A DNA stretch of 64,000 nt from Blastocladiella emersonii ATCC 22665 (GCA_025594325.1 JANHCV010000010.1:186001-250000), one strand, 5' to 3'; shown: positions 2,561 to 37,743, counted from the first letter of the stretch. Notes: generated from the sequence alone by a model not told the origin. A program made the numbers and translations.

Positions 2561-3424
2561 ATGACCGCCAACACCATCGCCCTCATCGGCCACCGCGGCC
2601 TCGCCGGCAAACCCATCGTCGAGGCCCTCGCCGCGTCGTCCGCCCACCCCAAGGTCAAGGTCCTGCACCGCCCCGGCTCGGACGCCTCGGGCCTGCCCGC
2701 CAACGTCGAGGCCGTCGAGGTCGATTTCGCCGACACGGCCGCCCTCACCAAGGCGCTCGCGGGCGTCGACATTCTGCTGTCCACGGTCGGCGCGCCGGGC
2801 ATCGCCGCGCAGATCGACCTGATCCCCGCCATCAAGGCCGCCGGCGTCAAGCTGTTCGTGCCGTCGGACCTCGCCGTGCTGTACACGCCGCACGAGCGCC
2901 GCGCGTTCGGGCTGCTCGAGGCCAAGGCGCGCGTCGAGGAGGCGCTGACCGCCGCGGGAGTGCCGTTCGCGGTGGTGCTGACGGGCGGGTTCACCGAGTA
3001 CTGCCTCGCGACGCCGTTCATCGGCATCGACGTCAAGGGCAACAAGCTGCACCTCGTGGGCAACGACGCGCGCACGCACTCGGTCGCGCTCAGCTCGACG
3101 GCGTACATTGCCGCGGCGTACGCATCGCTGTTCGCGGCGACGCCCGCGGCCGAGCTGGCGGGCCGCGCCATTGGCGTGAGCGAGGTCGTGGCCAATGGCG
3201 ACCAGATCGCGGCCGCGCTCGCCAAGAAGCACGGCGGCGTCGCGCCCACGGTCACGGTGCAGTCGCTGGCCGACGTCGACGCCGAGATCAAGACGAGCGA
3301 TTTCGCGCTGGCACCGCTGCTCCGCAAAAAGTGGGGGGCCGGATTCTTCACGGTCGGGTCCGACGTGCATATCGTCCCCGGGTACAAGCGTCGCACCCTC
3401 GAGGACTTCATCGCCAGCATCTGA
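2561..3424 (+). CDS. NmrA-like / isoflavone-reductase-like NAD(P)-binding protein (287 aa)
   Basis: caaaATG context; N-terminal Rossmann motif IALIGHRGLAG, plus GVDILLSTVG and GVKLFVPS; strong GC3 bias; single exon. Confidence 0.85.
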   Translation: MTANTIALIGHRGLAGKPIVEALAASSAHPKVKVLHRPGSDASGLPANVEAVEVDFADTAALTKALAGVDILLSTVGAPGIAAQIDLIPAIKAAGVKLFVPSDLAVLYTPHERRAFGLLEAKARVEEALTAAGVPFAVVLTGGFTEYCLATPFIGIDVKGNKLHLVGNDARTHSVALSSTAYIAAAYASLFAATPAAELAGRAIGVSEVVANGDQIAAALAKKHGGVAPTVTVQSLADVDAEIKTSDFALAPLLRKKWGAGFFTVGSDVHIVPGYKRRTLEDFIASI

Positions 3425-5379: not shown

Positions 5380-5649
5380 TTATTGATGATTCTCCTAGTT
5401 GTTGGGGAGAGCGAGGACCCTGTGAGTGCGTGAGCCACCGGACTTGGGGGGCGGGGTCGGCGACACGTTCTCCGACCTCGCCGACCTTGGGCGCCTCTCT
5501 CCCTCGCACTCCGCCGTCGCCGCTCATGAACTCGCTTATACCTGATGCAACTCCATGAACGATGATCTTGAAACCATGTTCCGTTGTCCGATCGGGCTCG
5601 CTCAAGGCAGCGTGATCCTTGCCGCTCGCGCGGAGCGGTGAGTCTCGAC

Positions 5650-6260
5650 CCGCTCCCGTTCCTTCGTGTTGCGCTGGGCATGTCCAAGTATCTTCGCGTC
5701 GACTTCGGGCTGTTCACGTTTACGTTCGTTTACGAGGCCGCCAACGCTTGCAACCAACCGCTTCTTAGGGAGTTTGCTGATATGTGCGAACCGAATGAAC
5801 CTGACGTTGAAGCTAGCTACGGGCGGCCTACTACGAAAGGCGGGCTGATACCCTTGAATCGTGGTGATCGCTGGGCATCTCGCCGCCCACGTTAGTTTGC
5901 TCCTCCGGGCCAACAGTCTCCGTATTCGACCTTCGGAGCGCACTGGTGTTGAGCTGGACACGAGCACCGTCGAGAAGGCCACCGAGCTTGACTGGATCCG
6001 CGCTTTGGATTGCATCAGTACAAGGTGATGCGTGCTTCCTTTAGCCCGGACATGGAATGAAGTTGAACATCGCTCCACTGGACCCGCTGTCCTCGGGTGG
6101 TGGCGCTGGAAGCGTCCAGTTTGGTTCAGAGCACGCCGATCATGGACATTGTTTTGGGCGACGTAACAGACCTGCTTCATCGTATTCGAGACGCTGCGCC
6201 TGCCACGGCCTTCTCGCACTGGTGCAGCACGATGCCATTGCTCCCCATGTTCCGCAGGCG
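5650..6260 (+). pseudogene. Degenerate ankyrin-repeat gene remnant
   Basis: Fragments YEAANACNQPLL, WASRR/HVSLL and AVLGWWR lie in different frames with intervening stops. Confidence 0.4.
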
Positions 6261-6629: not shown

Positions 6630-7657
6630 ATGGACTCGAATGAAACACGCGTCAAACGGCTGCCGCTCACGACGCGCTCGTGCACCCAAGCCTTACGGGC
6701 CGGCACGACCTTCTCGCGTGGTGGCAGCGGGCGGGACTCTGCTTGCCCAGCCGTGCCGAGTACTCGCTCTCGCTCCACGTCGCCGTCCTCGACTTTTGGC
6801 GCACGTCCGGAGTCGAGTTCACGTACAACGAGCAGTCCATTGACGGCGCCGCGTCCGATGGCCGCATCGACGTCCTCGAGTGGTGGCGCCTGAGCGGGCT
6901 CCCGCTCAAGTTCTCAAAACGCGCGCTGAACGGAGCCTCGGCCAACGGCCACCTCGCCGTGCTGCAGTGGTTTGAGACGCACGACCTCTTTCACCAGTCC
7001 TCGATGGACGCCGTCGACGGCGCCGCTGGCGTCGGCAACGTCATGATTTTCGAGTAGTGGTGGACGCTCAGCCACAAGTTTCTATACTCGCACCGCGCCA
7101 TGGACACGGCCGCGGCCAACGGCCATCTCCCCGTCGTCAAGTGGTTTACTGCGCATGGACTCGAGTTTCGGCAGCGACACGCGTTGTTCGAGGCGTTCCA
7201 AGGTGGCCACATTGACGTCTTGAACTGGTGGCGCGAGGCGGGGCTGCCCGTCTCCCTCACCGACATCATGCGCGAGGTGCGCCGCAACTTGTACCGTTTT
7301 CCCGTCCCAGCGCTCGAGTTCCTGCACGCCGTTGATCCGACGTGCTTTGACGGGATGAAGTGGAGGAAACTCATCCCCACCGGCATCCACTGCGGCCACA
7401 CGGAGCATCTCGCTTGGATTCTTGCTTGCCGCGTGCCGCAAGACAGTCGGCGATGGATCAGCGAGCCATCGGCCATCGATATCGCAAGCCGCGCTGGCCA
7501 AGTCGCCGTCCTTGACTGGCTGGTGGCCAACTTGTCGCAAGCCGCCTTCGAGTACACAACTCTGATACCGCAGCCGTACACTGTGCAAGTCCACGACTGG
7601 TTGGTTCATGCGGATGGTCGGCAAGCTCCAACCCCCTGCCCCAGTCCAAACCCCTGA
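6630..7657 (+). pseudogene. Ankyrin-repeat pseudogene (1-nt frameshift plus nonsense codon)
   Basis: Repeats SIDGAASDGRIDVLEWW, ALNGASANGHLAVLQW and AMDTAAANGHLPVVKW. Frameshift near 6703 (ALRAG/HDLLAWW). In-frame TAG at 7055-7057 sits where sister repeats have Trp; ORFs 6680 and 7100 are in the same frame. Confidence 0.8.
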
Positions 7658-32272: not shown

Positions 32273-32844
32273 GCGCCGCCTTCCCTCACTTCCTTTCTTC
32301 TTCTTGTTCGCTCGCTCGCTACCCTTGCTCCCTTGCTCGGTCTTCACCATACCTGTCGCTCCCGCCGACATCATTGACTATACCACATGGAACTGGCTCA
32401 CTGCGCGTGGGTGCTGAGACGGCGCACAGGGGAAGCGAACTGGTTCGGAGCACAACGAGCGACAGGAGCGCGATCTCGACCAGATGAGGACCCTCTCGGT
32501 CGACTAAGCTGTCTACGATGAGCAAGCTTAGTGCCGGTCAAGGACAAGGTTGTGTTGGACAAGTGGTACGGCGTCGATGCTGGACGCGCCGCCGGAGCGC
32601 GATCTCGCCAGTTGAGACTCCAACTGATTGACTAATAGGCCAACAAGGAGCGCACCTGCAGTGCCAGTCAAGAGCGAAATGGTGACGGGCCAGCGAGGGA
32701 AGGAGTTGTGACCGAGTTCCGGGACGCGTCGGTGAACGCGTCTGACGTGGCTGAACCCGCGCCGTGTGGCGCACGCAAACACGCTAACGCCTCGTCGCCG
32801 GACTTTGCTTGCTCGCTCTCTCCGTTTTCGTTGGAAATCTCAAA

Positions 32845-33596
32845 ATGGCACATACCATCTCGCCGTCACGCACACGCCTCGCCATCGCCGCGCGCACGCA
32901 CGCCGCCCTCGACGACGACGCCGTAAAAAAAAACATGCATCGACACCATGAAACTTGGCCACCGTCGCGACGCTGCCGCCCTGCCGAAACGCCGCCCCGC
33001 CGCCATGCCGGATGGTTGTGTGTGACCACCTCGCGCGAGACCACCCCCGCAGCACCCTGTCACCCCGAAACTACGCCGGATGGTTGCCCGTGCACTCCCC
33101 GCGTCCTGCAGCCTGGGGAGACTATCGCCGTTCGTTTTTTGGGTGGCCCGGCGAACCTATGCTCGGCGGCAGCGTCACGACGAAATTCGCGAAACTGGCG
33201 TCGTCGTCGTCGATCCCGGCGCCTTGTTTGCGTGCGCGCTACGTTGTCGAGGCGTGGGCAACCGCTATCGTCCACGCGAACGTCGCCACTGACGCCCTCG
33301 ACCCTGTGCACTTCCTTGCACCCTACAGGGTAAGGTCCACGGTTCGCTCGCTCGCGCTGGTAAGGTTAAGGGTCAGACCCCCAAGGTCGAGAAGCAGGCC
33401 GACAAGAAGAAGCCCAAGACCGGCCGCGCCAAGAAGCGCCTCATCTACATCCGCCGCTTCGTCAACGCCCCCGTCATGTTCGGCGGCAAGCGCAAGGTTC
33501 GCATCTGCTCGCTGCGCGATTGCCGCAATCAGTCGGAAGCTAACGCTGCCTTGTCGTCCGCTCCAGATGAACCCCGCCCCCACCGAGAAGCCCTAA
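32845..33596 (+). CDS. RPS30: 40S ribosomal protein S30 (eS30)
   Basis: Exon 33329-33496 [23 protein letters not shown]...RRFVN and exon 33567-33596. An ATG-only first exon at 32845-32847 (caaaATG) is inferred and would need a GC donor. Confidence 0.9.
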
Positions 33597-33810
33597 GCGT
33601 GCTCTTCCGCATCCGAAAAACGTCGTTGCGGGCAGCTCGCCCTGTCTTCAAACATAAATCACGAGTATTTGTATTTGAAGCAACTGAACCCGTTTCCTTG
33701 TCTACGCTCGCTTGAGGTTCTCGCCCATCAGGATCTCGCTCGACGCGAGACCGCTTCTTCAGCATCATCACCGATAGCGAGGTCGCGTCGGGTCCTCGCT
33801 CTCGCAAACC

Positions 33811-34263
33811 ATGAATCCAGCAGCATCAGCAGCATCGACGGCCCATGCGCGGTCGCTGATGCGCCAACTCTTGCGCGTATGCTGCCTCACAACCCGTCCA
33901 TGAGAGCGACGCGCACTCACAGTCCCTCAACAGCTCGCCCGCGCGATGCCAACACCCGAACGCCGGCGCGTCGTAGAGCGGCGCACGCTGGCCGAGTTCC
34001 GCGCCAACGCGTCGCTCGCCGACCCGGCCGCCGTCACGGACGCGCTGCTCCTCGCCGAGGTCCAGATCGACAACCTCGCCATGCAGGTCAGCCACCTGCG
34101 CGAGCTCGCCGCGGCTCCGCTCATTGTGCCCGTCGATATCCACCAGCGCGCACCCGAGGCGAGTGGTGCGAGTCGGCGCGAGGAGACGGAGCGCAGGGAC
34201 CGCGAGCGCGCCGCGTTGCGCGAGGCGGTGCGGCGGAGGCGGTTGCAGCAGCAGAAGGAGTAG
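33811..34263 (+). CDS. LYR-motif (Complex1_LYR-like) small mitochondrial-type protein
   Basis: Exons 33811-33876 and 33934-34263 give ARSLMRQLLR/LARAMP...RRTLAEFRAN, an LYR-like pattern. Confidence 0.65.
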
Positions 34264-34330
34264 ACGCGCGTGAGTAGAAGAACCGTTCATTGTATCCTTT
34301 TCGAATCCGTCAGCGATGCGCGGCGCGCCG

Positions 34331-35710
34331 TCACCCGTCCGCGTCGAGACTCGGCTCGCGCGCATGCCCCCGCGTCCGGCCCGACGACGGCGACGGCACG
34401 TCGAGCGTCGTCTGCGGACTCGCTCCACCCATGACGACCATGCGGCGGCGCTGGTTCGACGACGCGATGGGGAGCCGCGGGGACGCAATGCGCGGCGAGA
34501 GGTTCGGGTCGAGGCGCGCCGCGCTCAGGTCGCCCGTGGAGCTGCTGGCGCCGACGCCCGGGATCCCCGCAAACACGGAGGTCGCGGACCGGCTGAGCCG
34601 CGGCGCGGGCGCGGTCGCGGCGTGCACGCTGCCGAGCAAGGGCGTGCCGTACCCGCCGTGGTATGGGGTTGCTGCCGCGGCGAGCGTGCCCGTGAGCGAC
34701 GTGTACGACAGGGAGGGACCCAGTGGCGACGTCGGCGAGAGCGGCGGCGGGACGGGCGGCGGGTAGCCGTACGAGTAGGACGTGGCGGACTGGGCCTGGC
34801 GCGCCGAGATGACCTGGTTGAAGAACCCCGCGAACGCGTCGGACGACGGCGGCGAGTACATGCTCATGACGAGCTCGTTACCCGTCACCTCGAGGATGCT
34901 CGCGGACCGCGCGTGCGTCGGCGCGCCTGAGCCGAGGTCGCCGCCACTTGATGCCGAGGTGAACAGGCCGGGGACCAGGTCGCTCTTGGTGCCCACGATG
35001 AGGACGGGGATCCCGTTCGAGTACGGCGGCGCCCAGTCCGTCGGCGACATGGGGACAGCGGTGCGACCCGACCGCGGCGCTGCGGCGGTGGACGCGGGTT
35101 TGAGGATGGTCGCGCCGTCCTGCGCGTCGAGGACGTGGTTGACGTGCTTCCACATGGCGTCGAGCGTGCGCGGCACCGACAGGTCGTGCACGCCGATGAT
35201 CCCGTTGATGCTCGCGAACAGGACCGCGCGCGCGCCTGCGCCGAGGTGCCCGCGCGGTAGCGTCACGAGCTCGATCCAGTACGCCTTGCCGGTCGCGCCG
35301 TGATGGTGTATCTACTGTGCGTGGGCGACCGTCAAAGCGCGTCGGGGCGGTTGCGAGTGAAGATCACGCACCCGTACGCCGGTGAACGTCGACGTACTGA
35401 CGACGCCGCGCGCGTCCCCGCCCTTACCCCCGCCGCCGGTGCCGCCCCCGCTGCCGCCGAGCGACGCGTGGATGTGCGCGTCCGTCGACGTCAGGAACTG
35501 GAGCAAGGTCGACTTGCCCGTCGACGTGTCGCCGACAATGGCGATGCGGACCTTGACGTGCGGTTCAGGGACGCCCGATGGTGGCGATCCGCCGCTCAGT
35601 GACAGCGGCACGCTGAGCGCGGTCGAGCTGCCCCGGGGACTGCCGCGGCCGCTCGAGTCGCTCCCACCGCCGCCCATGCCGAGCGCGCTGTGGATCCATG
35701 AGACGGCCAT
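34331..35710 (-). CDS. RABL3: Rab-like protein 3 type atypical GTPase
   Basis: KVRIAIVGDTSTGKS P-loop; VR/IHHHG...AYWIELV across one intron; NGIIGVHDLS and ILIVGTKSDL; long disordered tail. Confidence 0.75.
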
Positions 35711-36293
35711 GGTAAGGTTGCAGTTACATAGAGAAGACGATGCGTGTTTCGCGCATGGACATGGTGGAGAGCGAGCAGGTGCTGCGGGACACACCGCCGG
35801 CCTGATCACACCGTTGCCGCGGCGTTCGGGCCTCCTTGGCCAAGCGGGACACAGCGCTTGCGGTTCAACATAGAGTAGCAACTAGAGATCATGCTCTACA
35901 ACAGCGGTGCCGAGAAGTGTTGGTAAAGTCTTGGCCGCTGTGCGAACCCCAGTGGGCGCCCAAGGAGAGTCGACGAGGCACCTGGTATGCTGATAGAAAG
36001 GCGAGGAGGAAGTCACGGGAAGCTGTGGGATTAGTGTGCACGGAACAAGCCCGCGACTGCGAGGTTGGCAGCGAGCGCCGTGTGCGCTGCGACGGACAAG
36101 CGAGGCGAGCGGAGGACAGGGTCGAAGGGCTGGACGGGTCGAAGAGGAGGTCGAGGAGCAGGAGCAAGGTCGAAGTGTGGCTGTGGCTGAAAAACGCCAC
36201 GTGCGCTACCCGACTTGCAGCGCCTCGATTCCACGTCGTTTGCTTCGCTGCGACGTTTGGCTGCTCGCTCTCCACCATACGGCCAAACGGAAA

Positions 36294-37530
36294 ATGGCGT
36301 CCACTACGCGCGTACGCTAGCGCCATCCCCATCGCTCGGGAGGGGCTGCGACCGCGCGAGCGCAACGAAAACGACACCATGCACACTCCATGACACCAAC
36401 GATGCACTTTACCCCGCCGCGGTGACCACCTCGCGCCACGTCGCCACGTCGCCACGCCCAACCATCCGCGCCGGCCGCCGCCCATCTCGCTACTCGGCAC
36501 TCTGCTCGTCGCTACGCTGGCGAAATTATCGCCGTTCGGGCAGCTGTCCGACTGCGCGTGACGCTGCGCTGACCCGCGGCCGAAATGCTGGTCGGAAATG
36601 CCGTCGACGCCAAGTCGTCACCGGCGACCATCCGCCGCGACGTCGCGCGCGCTCGGCCCGCTACCGTGACTATTGCTGCGCCCGGCGAACGAGCGCTCCC
36701 GCCCTCGCTGAACGCCGTCCGGCCGCTCGACCAGCGTCGTGCTGCGTGGGGAAACGCTGCTTGTGCAGAAACTCGTTTTCTACCTGGAAGCGGGCTGTTG
36801 CTGCGGGAAACGCCGTCACCCACAATCTCGTCATGGAGTGCTGCTTGCCGTCGTTTTCGTCGCGTTCGTCGTCGTGCGCCGTACCGAGACTCTGAACATG
36901 TGTTTTGGAGCCGTTTCGCTGACTTGACGCCTCCTCCGACTTCGCTGCTGCGCCACCCGCTCTTTCCCCTGCCCCCGCACTCGTCCTGTTCCCCTTGACG
37001 CCCTCTAGTTCAACGAGTACCAGGTCATTGGCCGCAAGCAGGTCACGGCCGCTGAGCCGAACCCGGCTCTGTACCGCATGCGCATCTTCGCGCCCAACAC
37101 GGTTGTGGCCAAGTCGCGCTTCTGGTACTTCCTCAAGCAGTTCCGCAAGGTCAAGAAGGCCACGGGCCAGATCGTGCAGGTCAACCAGATCCACGAGAAG
37201 AAGCCGACCCAGGTCAAGACCTTCGGCATCTGGCTCCGCTACGACTCGCGCTCGGGCACCCACAACATGTACAAGGAGTACCGCGAGCTGACCCGCACCG
37301 CCGCGGTCTTCGCGTGCTACCAGGACATGGCTGCCCGCCACCGTGCCCGCTTCCGCTCGGTCCAGATCATCCGCGTCGCCGAGGTCGCCACCAAGGACGT
37401 GCGCCGCCCCTACATCCAGCAGATCCTGGCCAAGAACCTCAAGTTCCCCCTGCCCCACCGCGTCCAGCGCGCCGCCTCCAAGCGCCACGAGTCGCTCTTC
37501 ATCGCCAAGCGCCCCTCGACCAACGCCTAA
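36294..37530 (+). CDS. RPL20: 60S ribosomal protein eL20 (L18a/L20)
   Basis: Exon 1 36294-36311 (MASTTR), 697-nt gtacgc...tag intron, exon 2 37009-37530: FNEYQVIGR...[21 protein letters not shown]...[15 protein letters not shown]...KFPLPHR. Confidence 0.95.
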
Positions 37531-37743
37531 ATGGGCTCCGAACGGTGACCTGGGTGGTGGGAGCAGTCGTCCGCGCCTCGCGTGCGGGCGGCGGTTCTCG
37601 TCGTGGACCGGGGTTGCTGCCGTTCCTCGCCCGGCTGCGGTTGTGCCCCGGCCCGTCGGGCGACCCAATACAGCATTGTTCTTTGAGCATCTCATTTGGT
37701 CTTCGTTGTCTTTTGAGTTTGATTCAAACCGTCATTCATCTAT

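Follow-up and report, generated by a model that had tools for sequence, protein, structure and literature searches.

GGATGG-N6-GTG, a candidate control element in the oversized first introns of RPS30 and RPL20 of Blastocladiella emersonii and other Blastocladiomycota

How fungi co-regulate their approximately 80 ribosomal protein (RP) genes is understood in yeasts and in few lineages besides, and the motifs that control this process have been replaced repeatedly in evolution. We know of no comparable RP element in Blastocladiomycota, a point on which no dedicated literature search was made. Here we describe the first introns of two neighbouring RP genes, RPS30 and RPL20, in a stretch of 64,000 nt from Blastocladiella emersonii ATCC 22665 (GCA_025594325.1 JANHCV010000010.1:186001-250000; hereafter "the window", to which all positions refer unless a locus of another species is named), and a short bipartite sequence, GGATGG-N6-GTG (hereafter "the box"), which occurs in both of them as well as in the corresponding genes of several relatives.

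The long RP introns of Saccharomyces cerevisiae resemble the introns described here in being 5'-proximal, in exceeding the typical length several times, and in a predicted long-range pairing that joins their ends. Yeast RPS30 also has a first exon composed of ATG only. On the other hand, the yeast introns come from a different phylum, their stems are unrelated in sequence to ours, in which the arms include simple repeats, and they are not known to carry a shared DNA box. Mammalian RP genes such as rpL30 and rpL32 possess YY1/delta and GABP sites downstream of the start, in exon 1 or intron 1, which are common to unrelated RP genes. The B. emersonii genes are similar in that short candidate sites are found in intron 1 of unrelated RP genes, but the sequence is different and no homologous factor is implied. 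The RP promoter motifs of other fungi (Rap1, Tbf1/Cbf1, HomolD, HomolE) are, like the box, short, restricted to particular lineages and often present in at least two copies; the box differs from them in being mainly intronic rather than upstream, and the order of its halves is opposite to that of HomolE-HomolD. In fission yeast, HomolD is CAGTCACA and HomolE is ACCCTACCCT. On the opposite strand, the second half of the box has the sequence GTCGTCAC or GGTCACA and loosely resembles HomolD, and the CCAT arrays mentioned below are loosely reminiscent of the tandem HomolE repeat. Among conceivable binders (ETS, Gcr1 with its CWTCC site, Reb1/TTF-I, Rap1, HomolD-like factors), none seems to fit the box well. 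Finally, RP introns commonly host small nucleolar RNAs (snoRNAs), and the introns analysed here share with the hosts of C/D or H/ACA snoRNAs the class of the gene and the length of the intron; they differ in having neither the characteristic boxes nor a match to a covariance model.

Of 105 B. emersonii introns surveyed in an earlier publication, most measured 60-79 nt, and the lengths ranged from 55 to 333 nt (PMC2773782). Because of this distribution, the first introns of RPS30 and RPL20, with 481 and 697 nt, have to be regarded as length outliers, and they agree with the pattern known from yeast, in which a 5'-proximal RP intron is far longer than is usual for the genome.

The box in RPS30 and RPL20 of Blastocladiomycota

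Our analysis revealed that the two B. emersonii introns share the bipartite box GGATGG-N6-GTG, an element absent from the list of common sequences in the initial annotation of this DNA. There are two copies in each intron (Table 1), the second of which belongs to the second unit of a direct repeat. The repeat units of RPS30 (family D4) are complementary to those of RPL20 (family D6), together forming the inverted repeat I6, with the common core CGGATGG-N6-GTG. This core has four matches in the window, all of them inside the two introns, against an expectation of 0.39 (0.39-0.60 across two counts).

In what we consider the best reading of these data, with a probability of roughly 0.45, the box belongs to a cluster of DNA regulatory sites located inside a yeast-like, structured "zipper" intron. 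Both introns would represent, in B. emersonii, an old trait of the RP genes of Blastocladiomycota, namely a first intron that sits immediately behind the ATG in RPS30, or a few codons further on in RPL20, and that in most species is many times longer than an ordinary intron. At the level of DNA, the centre of the intron would hold a cluster of short, putatively bound transcription factor sites that drive the RP genes, with GGATGG-N6-GTG, often embedded in GGAT/CCAT arrays, as the core site. The box would act in either orientation and, in one species, from an upstream position, like an enhancer or an upstream activating site. At the level of RNA, the ends of the intron are predicted to pair over tens of base pairs, as a "zipper" that would bring the 5' splice site near the branch point; by analogy to the yeast RP introns, this would let an intron of 300-700 nt be spliced by a machinery tuned to introns of 60-80 nt.

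The cross-species evidence comes from the RPS30 and RPL20 loci of B. emersonii and six relatives, i.e. seven species of Blastocladiomycota in all, and from a chytrid outgroup. The relatives comprise B. britannica (RPS30 in locus L002, RPL20 in L001), Catenaria (L003 and L004), two assemblies of Allomyces (L005-L009, with three copies of RPL20 and two of RPS30), Sorochytrium (L010), Paraphysoderma (L011 and L012) and Coelomomyces (L013); the outgroup is Cladochytrium (L014 and L015). GGATGG-N6-GTG has 11 matches in the 174.6 kb of DNA from Blastocladiomycota, which amount to six independent gene-by-species cases. Every one of them is in the 5' region of RPS30 or RPL20, regions that account for 6.9% of the total; the approximately 163 kb of flanking DNA contain no match. 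Four of the seven species have the box (B. emersonii, B. britannica, Allomyces and Coelomomyces), and none was found in the Cladochytrium loci. In a negative control composed of 80 metagenomic RPL20 loci from other eukaryotes (identity up to 76%), there were two matches, one of them near the 5' end of a gene.

A matrix derived from the four B. emersonii sites only placed a site in the RP first intron at the top of the ranking in five out of five Allomyces loci. The word ACGGATGGAC is the only one of at least 8 nt that occurs in all Allomyces copies and is common to the introns of RPS30 and RPL20 (on either strand); in the Allomyces RPS30 intron, the columns of which are otherwise 70% identical, it is situated within a stretch of 25 nt without any change, the second longest of its kind. 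With the refined matrix we found on the minus strand of the B. britannica RPS30 intron the 16-mer GGATGGACTGGCGTGG, which is identical to the plus-strand site of Allomyces RPL20. B. emersonii RPS30 and Allomyces RPL20 carry the box on the plus strand; in B. emersonii RPL20 and in RPS30 of both B. britannica and Allomyces it is on the minus strand, and in Coelomomyces it is a part of a (CCAT)n array approximately 300 nt upstream of the ATG. The hexamer GGATGG/CCATCC is the top cross-species hexamer in the introns (10 observed versus 1.04 expected). Of the 12 gene-by-species 5' regions, 10 contain it at a rate several-fold above background, and it often forms tandem arrays (e.g. in Sorochytrium, Paraphysoderma and B. 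britannica).

Its confinement to RPS30 and RPL20 in the sampled DNA and its conservation in introns that are otherwise scrambled speak for a function of the box. Enrichment with respect to other DNA, conservation in diverged surroundings, and independence of orientation and position are features of transcription factor sites, and from its sequence behaviour we consider the box most likely to be one. GT-rich sequences (GGTGTGTGGTGGCC or GGTGACCTGGGTGGTGG) similar to the 3' part of the box, GTG and its surroundings, were also seen just after the stop codons of Allomyces RPS30 (L008 3871-3900, L009 3833-3862), Allomyces RPL20 (L006 4244-4273) and B. emersonii RPL20 (window 37545-37565).

The intron itself is more widespread than the box. 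The position of the first intron is kept in six out of six relatives, with lengths of approximately 115-700 nt. RPS30 has an ATG-only exon followed by an intron of 300-585 nt in every species of Blastocladiomycota with the locus. The RPL20 intron, placed after the first 3-6 codons, has 370-697 nt in Blastocladiella, Catenaria and Allomyces, and is short (approximately 115-130 nt) in Sorochytrium and Paraphysoderma. In the outgroup Cladochytrium, the RPS30 intron is found in the same place (approximately 160 nt), and RPL20 contains no intron at the corresponding position.

Collinear blocks and predicted folding of the introns

The initial annotation described four sequence blocks that occur in the same order in the first introns of RPS30 and RPL20 and interpreted them as a candidate regulatory element shared by unrelated RP genes. 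All four blocks are exact and were correctly placed (Table 1), and we identified two additional collinear 10-mers, one of them in the branch-site region. For shared words of at least 10 nt, the best collinear chain between the two introns has a score of 68, whereas the maxima of the controls are 41 (2000 dinucleotide shuffles), 44 (6000 shuffles that preserve local composition) and 54 (approximately 3000 pairs of random window segments of matching size). The common sequence is therefore not random. The score is 53 after masking of block 2 and the box, and blocks 1, 3 and 4 alone yield a chain of 33 (P ~0.002). The likeness is limited to short blocks: a global alignment of the two introns is uninformative, the best blastn match (64% over 120 columns, E 0.012) is of the kind obtained for unrelated GC-rich sequences, so that there is no extended homology, and the spacers between the blocks vary from 11 to 141 nt. 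Blastn searches of the window detected no other copies of either intron beyond chance-level matches, and blocks 2 and 3 are unique in the window even if 2-3 mismatches are allowed (for block 2 of RPS30 there is nothing closer than 3). A dispersed repeat, which the initial annotation had named among the findings that would undermine its proposal, or a remnant of a transposon is thus ruled out within the window.

The proposed element is supported in part. One element is indeed conserved in RPS30 and RPL20 of other Blastocladiomycota, but it does not correspond to the four blocks as they were drawn: it is GGATGG-N6-GTG, whose overlap with block 2 is limited to RPS30. In RPL20 the box has the opposite orientation, and block 2 is found 17 nt from an inverted copy. 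In the orthologous introns, blocks 1-4 were not recovered at 1-3 mismatches, except for block 1 in B. britannica RPS30, of which a copy with one mismatch is located about as far from the 5' splice site as in B. emersonii. The core of block 1, CGACACC, is enriched in the RP introns of three species (6 observed versus 0.49 expected). As judged from sequence comparison, blocks 1, 3 and 4 are specific to B. emersonii, and in the reading with a cluster of regulatory sites they would be further, species-specific elements of the module, with block 2 in part overlapping the box.

A role in RNA or common descent would account more readily for the collinear order of blocks 1-4. The word-chain test applied to all pairs of introns is significant only for RPS30 versus RPL20 of B. 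emersonii (z 3.9); the same pair in B. britannica, Catenaria and Allomyces yields no significant chain, and orthologous first introns are not alignable by word chains. If the collinear blocks were a functionless trace of ectopic conversion or duplication between neighbouring introns 3.4 kb apart, in the lineage of B. emersonii, one would understand why only this pair has a significant chain, why the two genes concerned are adjacent and co-oriented, and why blocks 1, 3 and 4 were not recovered in other species at 1-2 mismatches. We nevertheless consider such an origin improbable, because there is no residual likeness between the blocks, the spacers are unequal, and the retention of exact 10-15-mers in otherwise randomised sequence points to selection on the blocks themselves; moreover, recent copying cannot explain the inversion of the box or its conservation in Allomyces, B. 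britannica and Coelomomyces.

We folded eight introns and compared their minimum free energies (MFE) with those of dinucleotide shuffles. Six of them are more stable than the shuffles (z-scores between -2.5 and -5.4), namely five of the six orthologous introns, RPS30 (-5.39) and RPL20 (-4.03) of B. britannica, RPS30 (-4.17) and RPL20 (-4.12) of Allomyces and RPL20 of Catenaria (-2.54), as well as RPS30 of B. emersonii (-3.65); the remaining values are -1.61 for Catenaria RPS30 and 0.0 for B. emersonii RPL20. Long-range pairs are in excess in most of the folded introns. For the RPS30 intron of B. emersonii, the MFE is -199 kcal/mol (z -4.5 and -3.65 in two shuffle tests) and the predicted structure contains 50 long-range pairs, compared with a shuffle mean of 19; the arms of its long-range stem are nested inverted repeats (I4, I12 and I18) with 84-94% complementarity. 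The stem of the B. emersonii RPL20 intron, one arm of which holds block 1, was also detected by blastn (inverted repeat I5; 39 nt, 85% complementarity, E 1e-4). Consensus folding of the RPL20 introns of Allomyces (three copies) predicts a zipper of approximately 75 bp between position 5 and the branch site, with compensatory changes in 7 of 195 pairs and a slightly unfavourable covariation term (+5.61), in a comparison of three sequences only. The arms of the stems are in part complementary simple repeats, such as (ACG)n/(CGT)n in B. emersonii RPS30 (32908-32923 and 33199-33213) and (CCAT)n/(GGAT)n in B. britannica RPS30 (L002, 5770-5785 and 5876-5910).

A specific hairpin suggested in the initial annotation, in which TCGCCG of block 3 would pair with CGGCGA of block 4, was not supported: its probability is ~0 in the Boltzmann ensembles of both introns. 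In the RPS30 ensemble block 3 pairs with copy b of the box and block 4 with intron positions 143-147, whereas in the RPL20 ensemble block 3 pairs locally and block 1 is engaged in the long-range stem (pair probabilities 0.9-1.0 at the paired positions). Since the pairing partners differ between the two introns, the blocks have no common structural context.

The blocks and the box may also act in the pre-mRNA, as splicing enhancers, protein-binding sites or parts of a fold that couple the splicing of RP transcripts, a possibility that we regard as rather unlikely. Nearly all sites are located in the 5' untranslated region (UTR) or in the first intron, the introns are strongly structured, and neither the strand nor the order of blocks 1-4 differs between the B. 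emersonii introns; order should matter more for an RNA than for enhancers. Further, CCATCC predominates on the sense strand (seven gene cases contain only CCATCC and one only GGATGG), and some boxes have a complementary partner, for instance CCATCCGTC and the intronic GACGGATGG in Allomyces RPL20. It is difficult to reconcile with this explanation that the full box switches strand from one B. emersonii gene to the other and among orthologues, that it has no complementary partner in either B. emersonii intron, that the contexts of the blocks differ and the pairing of blocks 3 and 4 has a probability of ~0, that the copy in Coelomomyces is approximately 300 nt upstream of the ATG, and that there is no match to any Rfam family. 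The box fits a site for a transcription factor on double-stranded DNA better than an RNA signal because of its strand flips, the absence of a partner in the B. emersonii introns, and the upstream location in Coelomomyces. A more elaborate version, in which blocks and box would form an RNA-level control module of ordered motifs within the zipper fold, read by a common factor, appears distinctly improbable to us. If true, such a module would switch the splicing or stability of many RP pre-mRNAs together, e.g. at sporulation or germination, and an early-diverging fungus would then operate its RP regulon by way of introns.

In Allomyces RPL20, CCATCCGTC is placed in the 5' UTR, 12 nt before the ATG, and is the perfect complement of GACGGATGG in the intronic box approximately 315 nt downstream; both are kept in all three Allomyces copies of the gene (L005-L007, 2989-2997 and ~3292-3330).

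Each intron could instead host a gene for a small non-coding RNA, either a snoRNA or an RNA with its own promoter on either strand, with the box as a part of that RNA. A free choice of strand would suit independently transcribed genes. Nonetheless, each intron contains two copies of the box, the copy in Coelomomyces is situated in the upstream intergenic region, and searches for known RNAs were negative, so we assign very little weight to this possibility. The initial annotation had seen no clear C/D boxes, and we can confirm that neither RUGAUGA nor the relaxed UGAUGN occurs on either strand of either intron. A search with the Rfam covariance models, which had been recommended there, identified no family: there was no match at the gathering threshold in the 64-kb window, only three unrelated, chance-level matches (all up to 21 bits, E above 1) in the region 32700-37100 at E up to 5, and no match at E up to 1 in L001, L002, L005 and L008. 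An intron-hosted snoRNA is ruled out by the lack of a C box and of a covariance-model match.

Several observations weigh against a cluster of regulatory sites within a zipper intron. No exact box was found in B. britannica RPL20, in either gene of Catenaria, in Sorochytrium or in Paraphysoderma; with the exception of B. britannica RPL20, all of these carry the hexamer. A generic motif search with mismatches in the eight introns (9-mers with one mismatch, 11-mers with two) performed no better than in shuffled sequences. The pattern was defined in part from sequences that were subsequently counted (B. emersonii and Allomyces); in the independent subset, i.e. species that did not contribute to the definition, two out of two matches are in RP 5' regions. 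The RP genes sampled are RPS30 and RPL20 of each species, and such a set does not cover specificity for the RP regulon. All box sites except the one in Coelomomyces are in transcribed sequence and may act in RNA, and a complementary copy that could pair with the box in the pre-mRNA exists in B. britannica RPS30, Allomyces RPS30 and Allomyces RPL20; the B. emersonii box has no such partner inside either intron. Finally, the whole RPL20 intron of B. emersonii is no stabler than its shuffles (z -0.6 and 0.0).

Gene models, neighbouring genes and the upstream pyrimidine element

Table 1. Positions of genes, shared sequences and predicted stems in the window.
Feature	Position	Strand	Remarks
RPS30 exon 1 (ATG only)	32845-32847	+	exon 2 without ATG; orthologues have ATG, then intron
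RPS30 intron 1 (481 nt)	32848-33328	+	apparent GC-AG (GCACAT...CAG); fits the coding sequence
RPS30 exon 2	33329-33496	+	
RPS30 intron 2 (70 nt)	33497-33566	+	
RPS30 exon 3	33567-33596	+	
RPL20 exon 1 (MASTTR)	36294-36311	+	public protein P0001 joins ...MASTTR to FNEYQ
RPL20 intron 1 (697 nt)	36312-37008	+	GTACGC...TAG; exon junction matches P0001
RPL20 exon 2	37009-37530	+	173 codons and stop
Box, RPS30 copy a	33009-33024	+	3' half overlaps block 2
Box, RPS30 copy b	33077-33092	+	second unit of 41-nt direct repeat, 68-nt spacing, family D4
Box, RPL20 copy a	36453-36468	-	
Box, RPL20 copy b	36619-36634	-	second unit of 31-nt direct repeat, 166-nt spacing, family D6
Block 1 CGACACCATG	RPS30 32941-32950; RPL20 36372-36381	+	
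Block 2 GTGACCACCTCGCGC	RPS30 33022-33036; RPL20 36422-36436	+	
Block 3 TATCGCCGTTCG	RPS30 33123-33134; RPL20 36527-36538	+	
Block 4 GCCCGGCGAAC	RPS30 33146-33156; RPL20 36680-36690	+	
Collinear 10-mer TCGTCGTCGT	33201; 36866		
Collinear 10-mer TGACGCCCTC	33290; 36996		branch-site region
RPS30 long-range stem, 5' arm (predicted)	32870-32980	+	nested inverted repeats
RPS30 long-range stem, 3' arm (predicted)	33165-33259	+	pairs with 32870-32980
RPL20 long-range stem, 5' arm (predicted)	36357-36394	+	holds block 1
RPL20 long-range stem, 3' arm (predicted)	36830-36868	+	
Pyrimidine-rich element TGCTCGCTCTC before RPS30	32810-32820	+	general, not RP-specific
Element CTGCTCGCTCTCCACCAT upstream of RPL20	36261-36278	+	contains TGCTCGCTCTC from 36262
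Perfect inverted copy of CTGCTCGCTCTCCACCAT (18 nt)	35761-35778	-	repeat I17, before divergent GTPase-like gene
CTCGCTCTC sites	5407, 6763, 14980, 30972, 32812, 33795, 35767, 36264, 42888, 50342		minus strand at 5407 and 35767

The translation of RPS30 exon 2 is 95% identical to S30 of B. britannica. An ATG directly followed by an intron was found in RPS30 of B. britannica, Catenaria, Allomyces, Paraphysoderma, Coelomomyces and a chytrid. The donor of the apparent GC-AG intron of B. emersonii (GCACAT) is weak, and all orthologues examined have GT after the ATG (GTCGGA in B. britannica, GTTTGT in Catenaria, GTGCGC in Allomyces, GTAAGC in Paraphysoderma, GTAAAC in Coelomomyces and GTAAAG in Cladochytrium). 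Another ATG, followed by GTGACG, is present at 32679, without the conserved AAAATGG context. Searches of public proteins returned none identical to B. emersonii RPS30, which appears to be missing from the annotation of this species, and the S30 entries of B. britannica and Catenaria (P0121 and P0122) are marked as partial; on these grounds, the ATG-only first exon seems to have been overlooked by annotators or gene callers.

The translation of 37009-37527 is 100% identical to P0001, which is the entry for 60S ribosomal protein L20B in B. emersonii ATCC 22665; the next matches are from B. britannica (89%), Catenaria anguillulae (86%) and Allomyces macrogynus (84%). P0001 has 214 aa, compared to 176-179 aa in the relatives, with approximately 35 extra residues at the N-terminus. 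This extension, which originates from upstream of the conserved ATG (35880-36311), is probably an artefact of annotation.

Between RPS30 and a GTPase-like gene there is a small open reading frame of 105 aa (33946-34263, plus strand), with a copy of CTCGCTCTC upstream of it at 33795. The divergent pair of the GTPase-like gene and RPL20 is common to B. emersonii and B. britannica. VAC14 is upstream of RPS30 in the window, and in B. britannica it is found approximately 2.8 kb upstream, with two small genes in between. The B. britannica RPS30 borders the end of its contig, and the distance to RPL20 is not less than 7 kb.

A pyrimidine-rich element, TGCTCGCTCTC, had been noted in the initial annotation shortly before the ATG of both genes. 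It is present in both places, but its specificity for RP genes was not upheld, as a further copy (35767, minus strand) precedes the GTPase-like gene. This copy belongs to the inverted repeat of CTGCTCGCTCTCCACCAT in the divergent region of approximately 580 nt, in which the GTPase-like gene (minus strand, ATG near 35712) and RPL20 have one copy each. The core CTCGCTCTC occurs 10 times in the window, compared to 1.8 expected, i.e. it is approximately fivefold over-represented, and half of the copies are within approximately 30 nt upstream of an ATG. The copies at 5407 (minus strand), 33795 and 35767 (minus strand) too are placed 4-27 nt before the first downstream ATG, and among these three only the one at 5407 opens a long reading frame. 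An RP-specific initiator of the TCT/TOP-like kind would be limited to genes for RPs and translation, and TGCTCGCTCTC does not show this restriction. From its distribution, CTCGCTCTC looks like a candidate general promoter-proximal, initiator or core-promoter element of B. emersonii.

By eye only, we noted that all Blastocladiomycota RPS30 and RPL20 genes inspected have a short stretch of pyrimidines (CTCTC, CCTCTC or CCCTTTC) at a distance of 25-60 nt upstream of the ATG: window 32812-32823 and 36264-36269, L001 ~7370-7386, L002 ~5570-5580, L003 ~5660-5668, L004 ~5970-5980, L005 ~2948-2958, L008 ~2972-2982, and L012 ~2945-2956. Such runs are reminiscent, in sequence, of RP initiators of the TCT/TOP type.

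Significance for RP genes of Blastocladiomycota

Our analysis flags problems in the public annotation of both genes, namely an apparently missing RPS30 in B. emersonii and its partial entries in two relatives, as well as an extended N-terminus of RPL20. GGATGG-N6-GTG provides a concrete, short candidate for an RP control element in Blastocladiomycota. In addition, oversized and highly folded RP introns similar to those of yeast occur in a distant phylum of zoospore-forming fungi, and this pattern is either older than thought or evolved twice.

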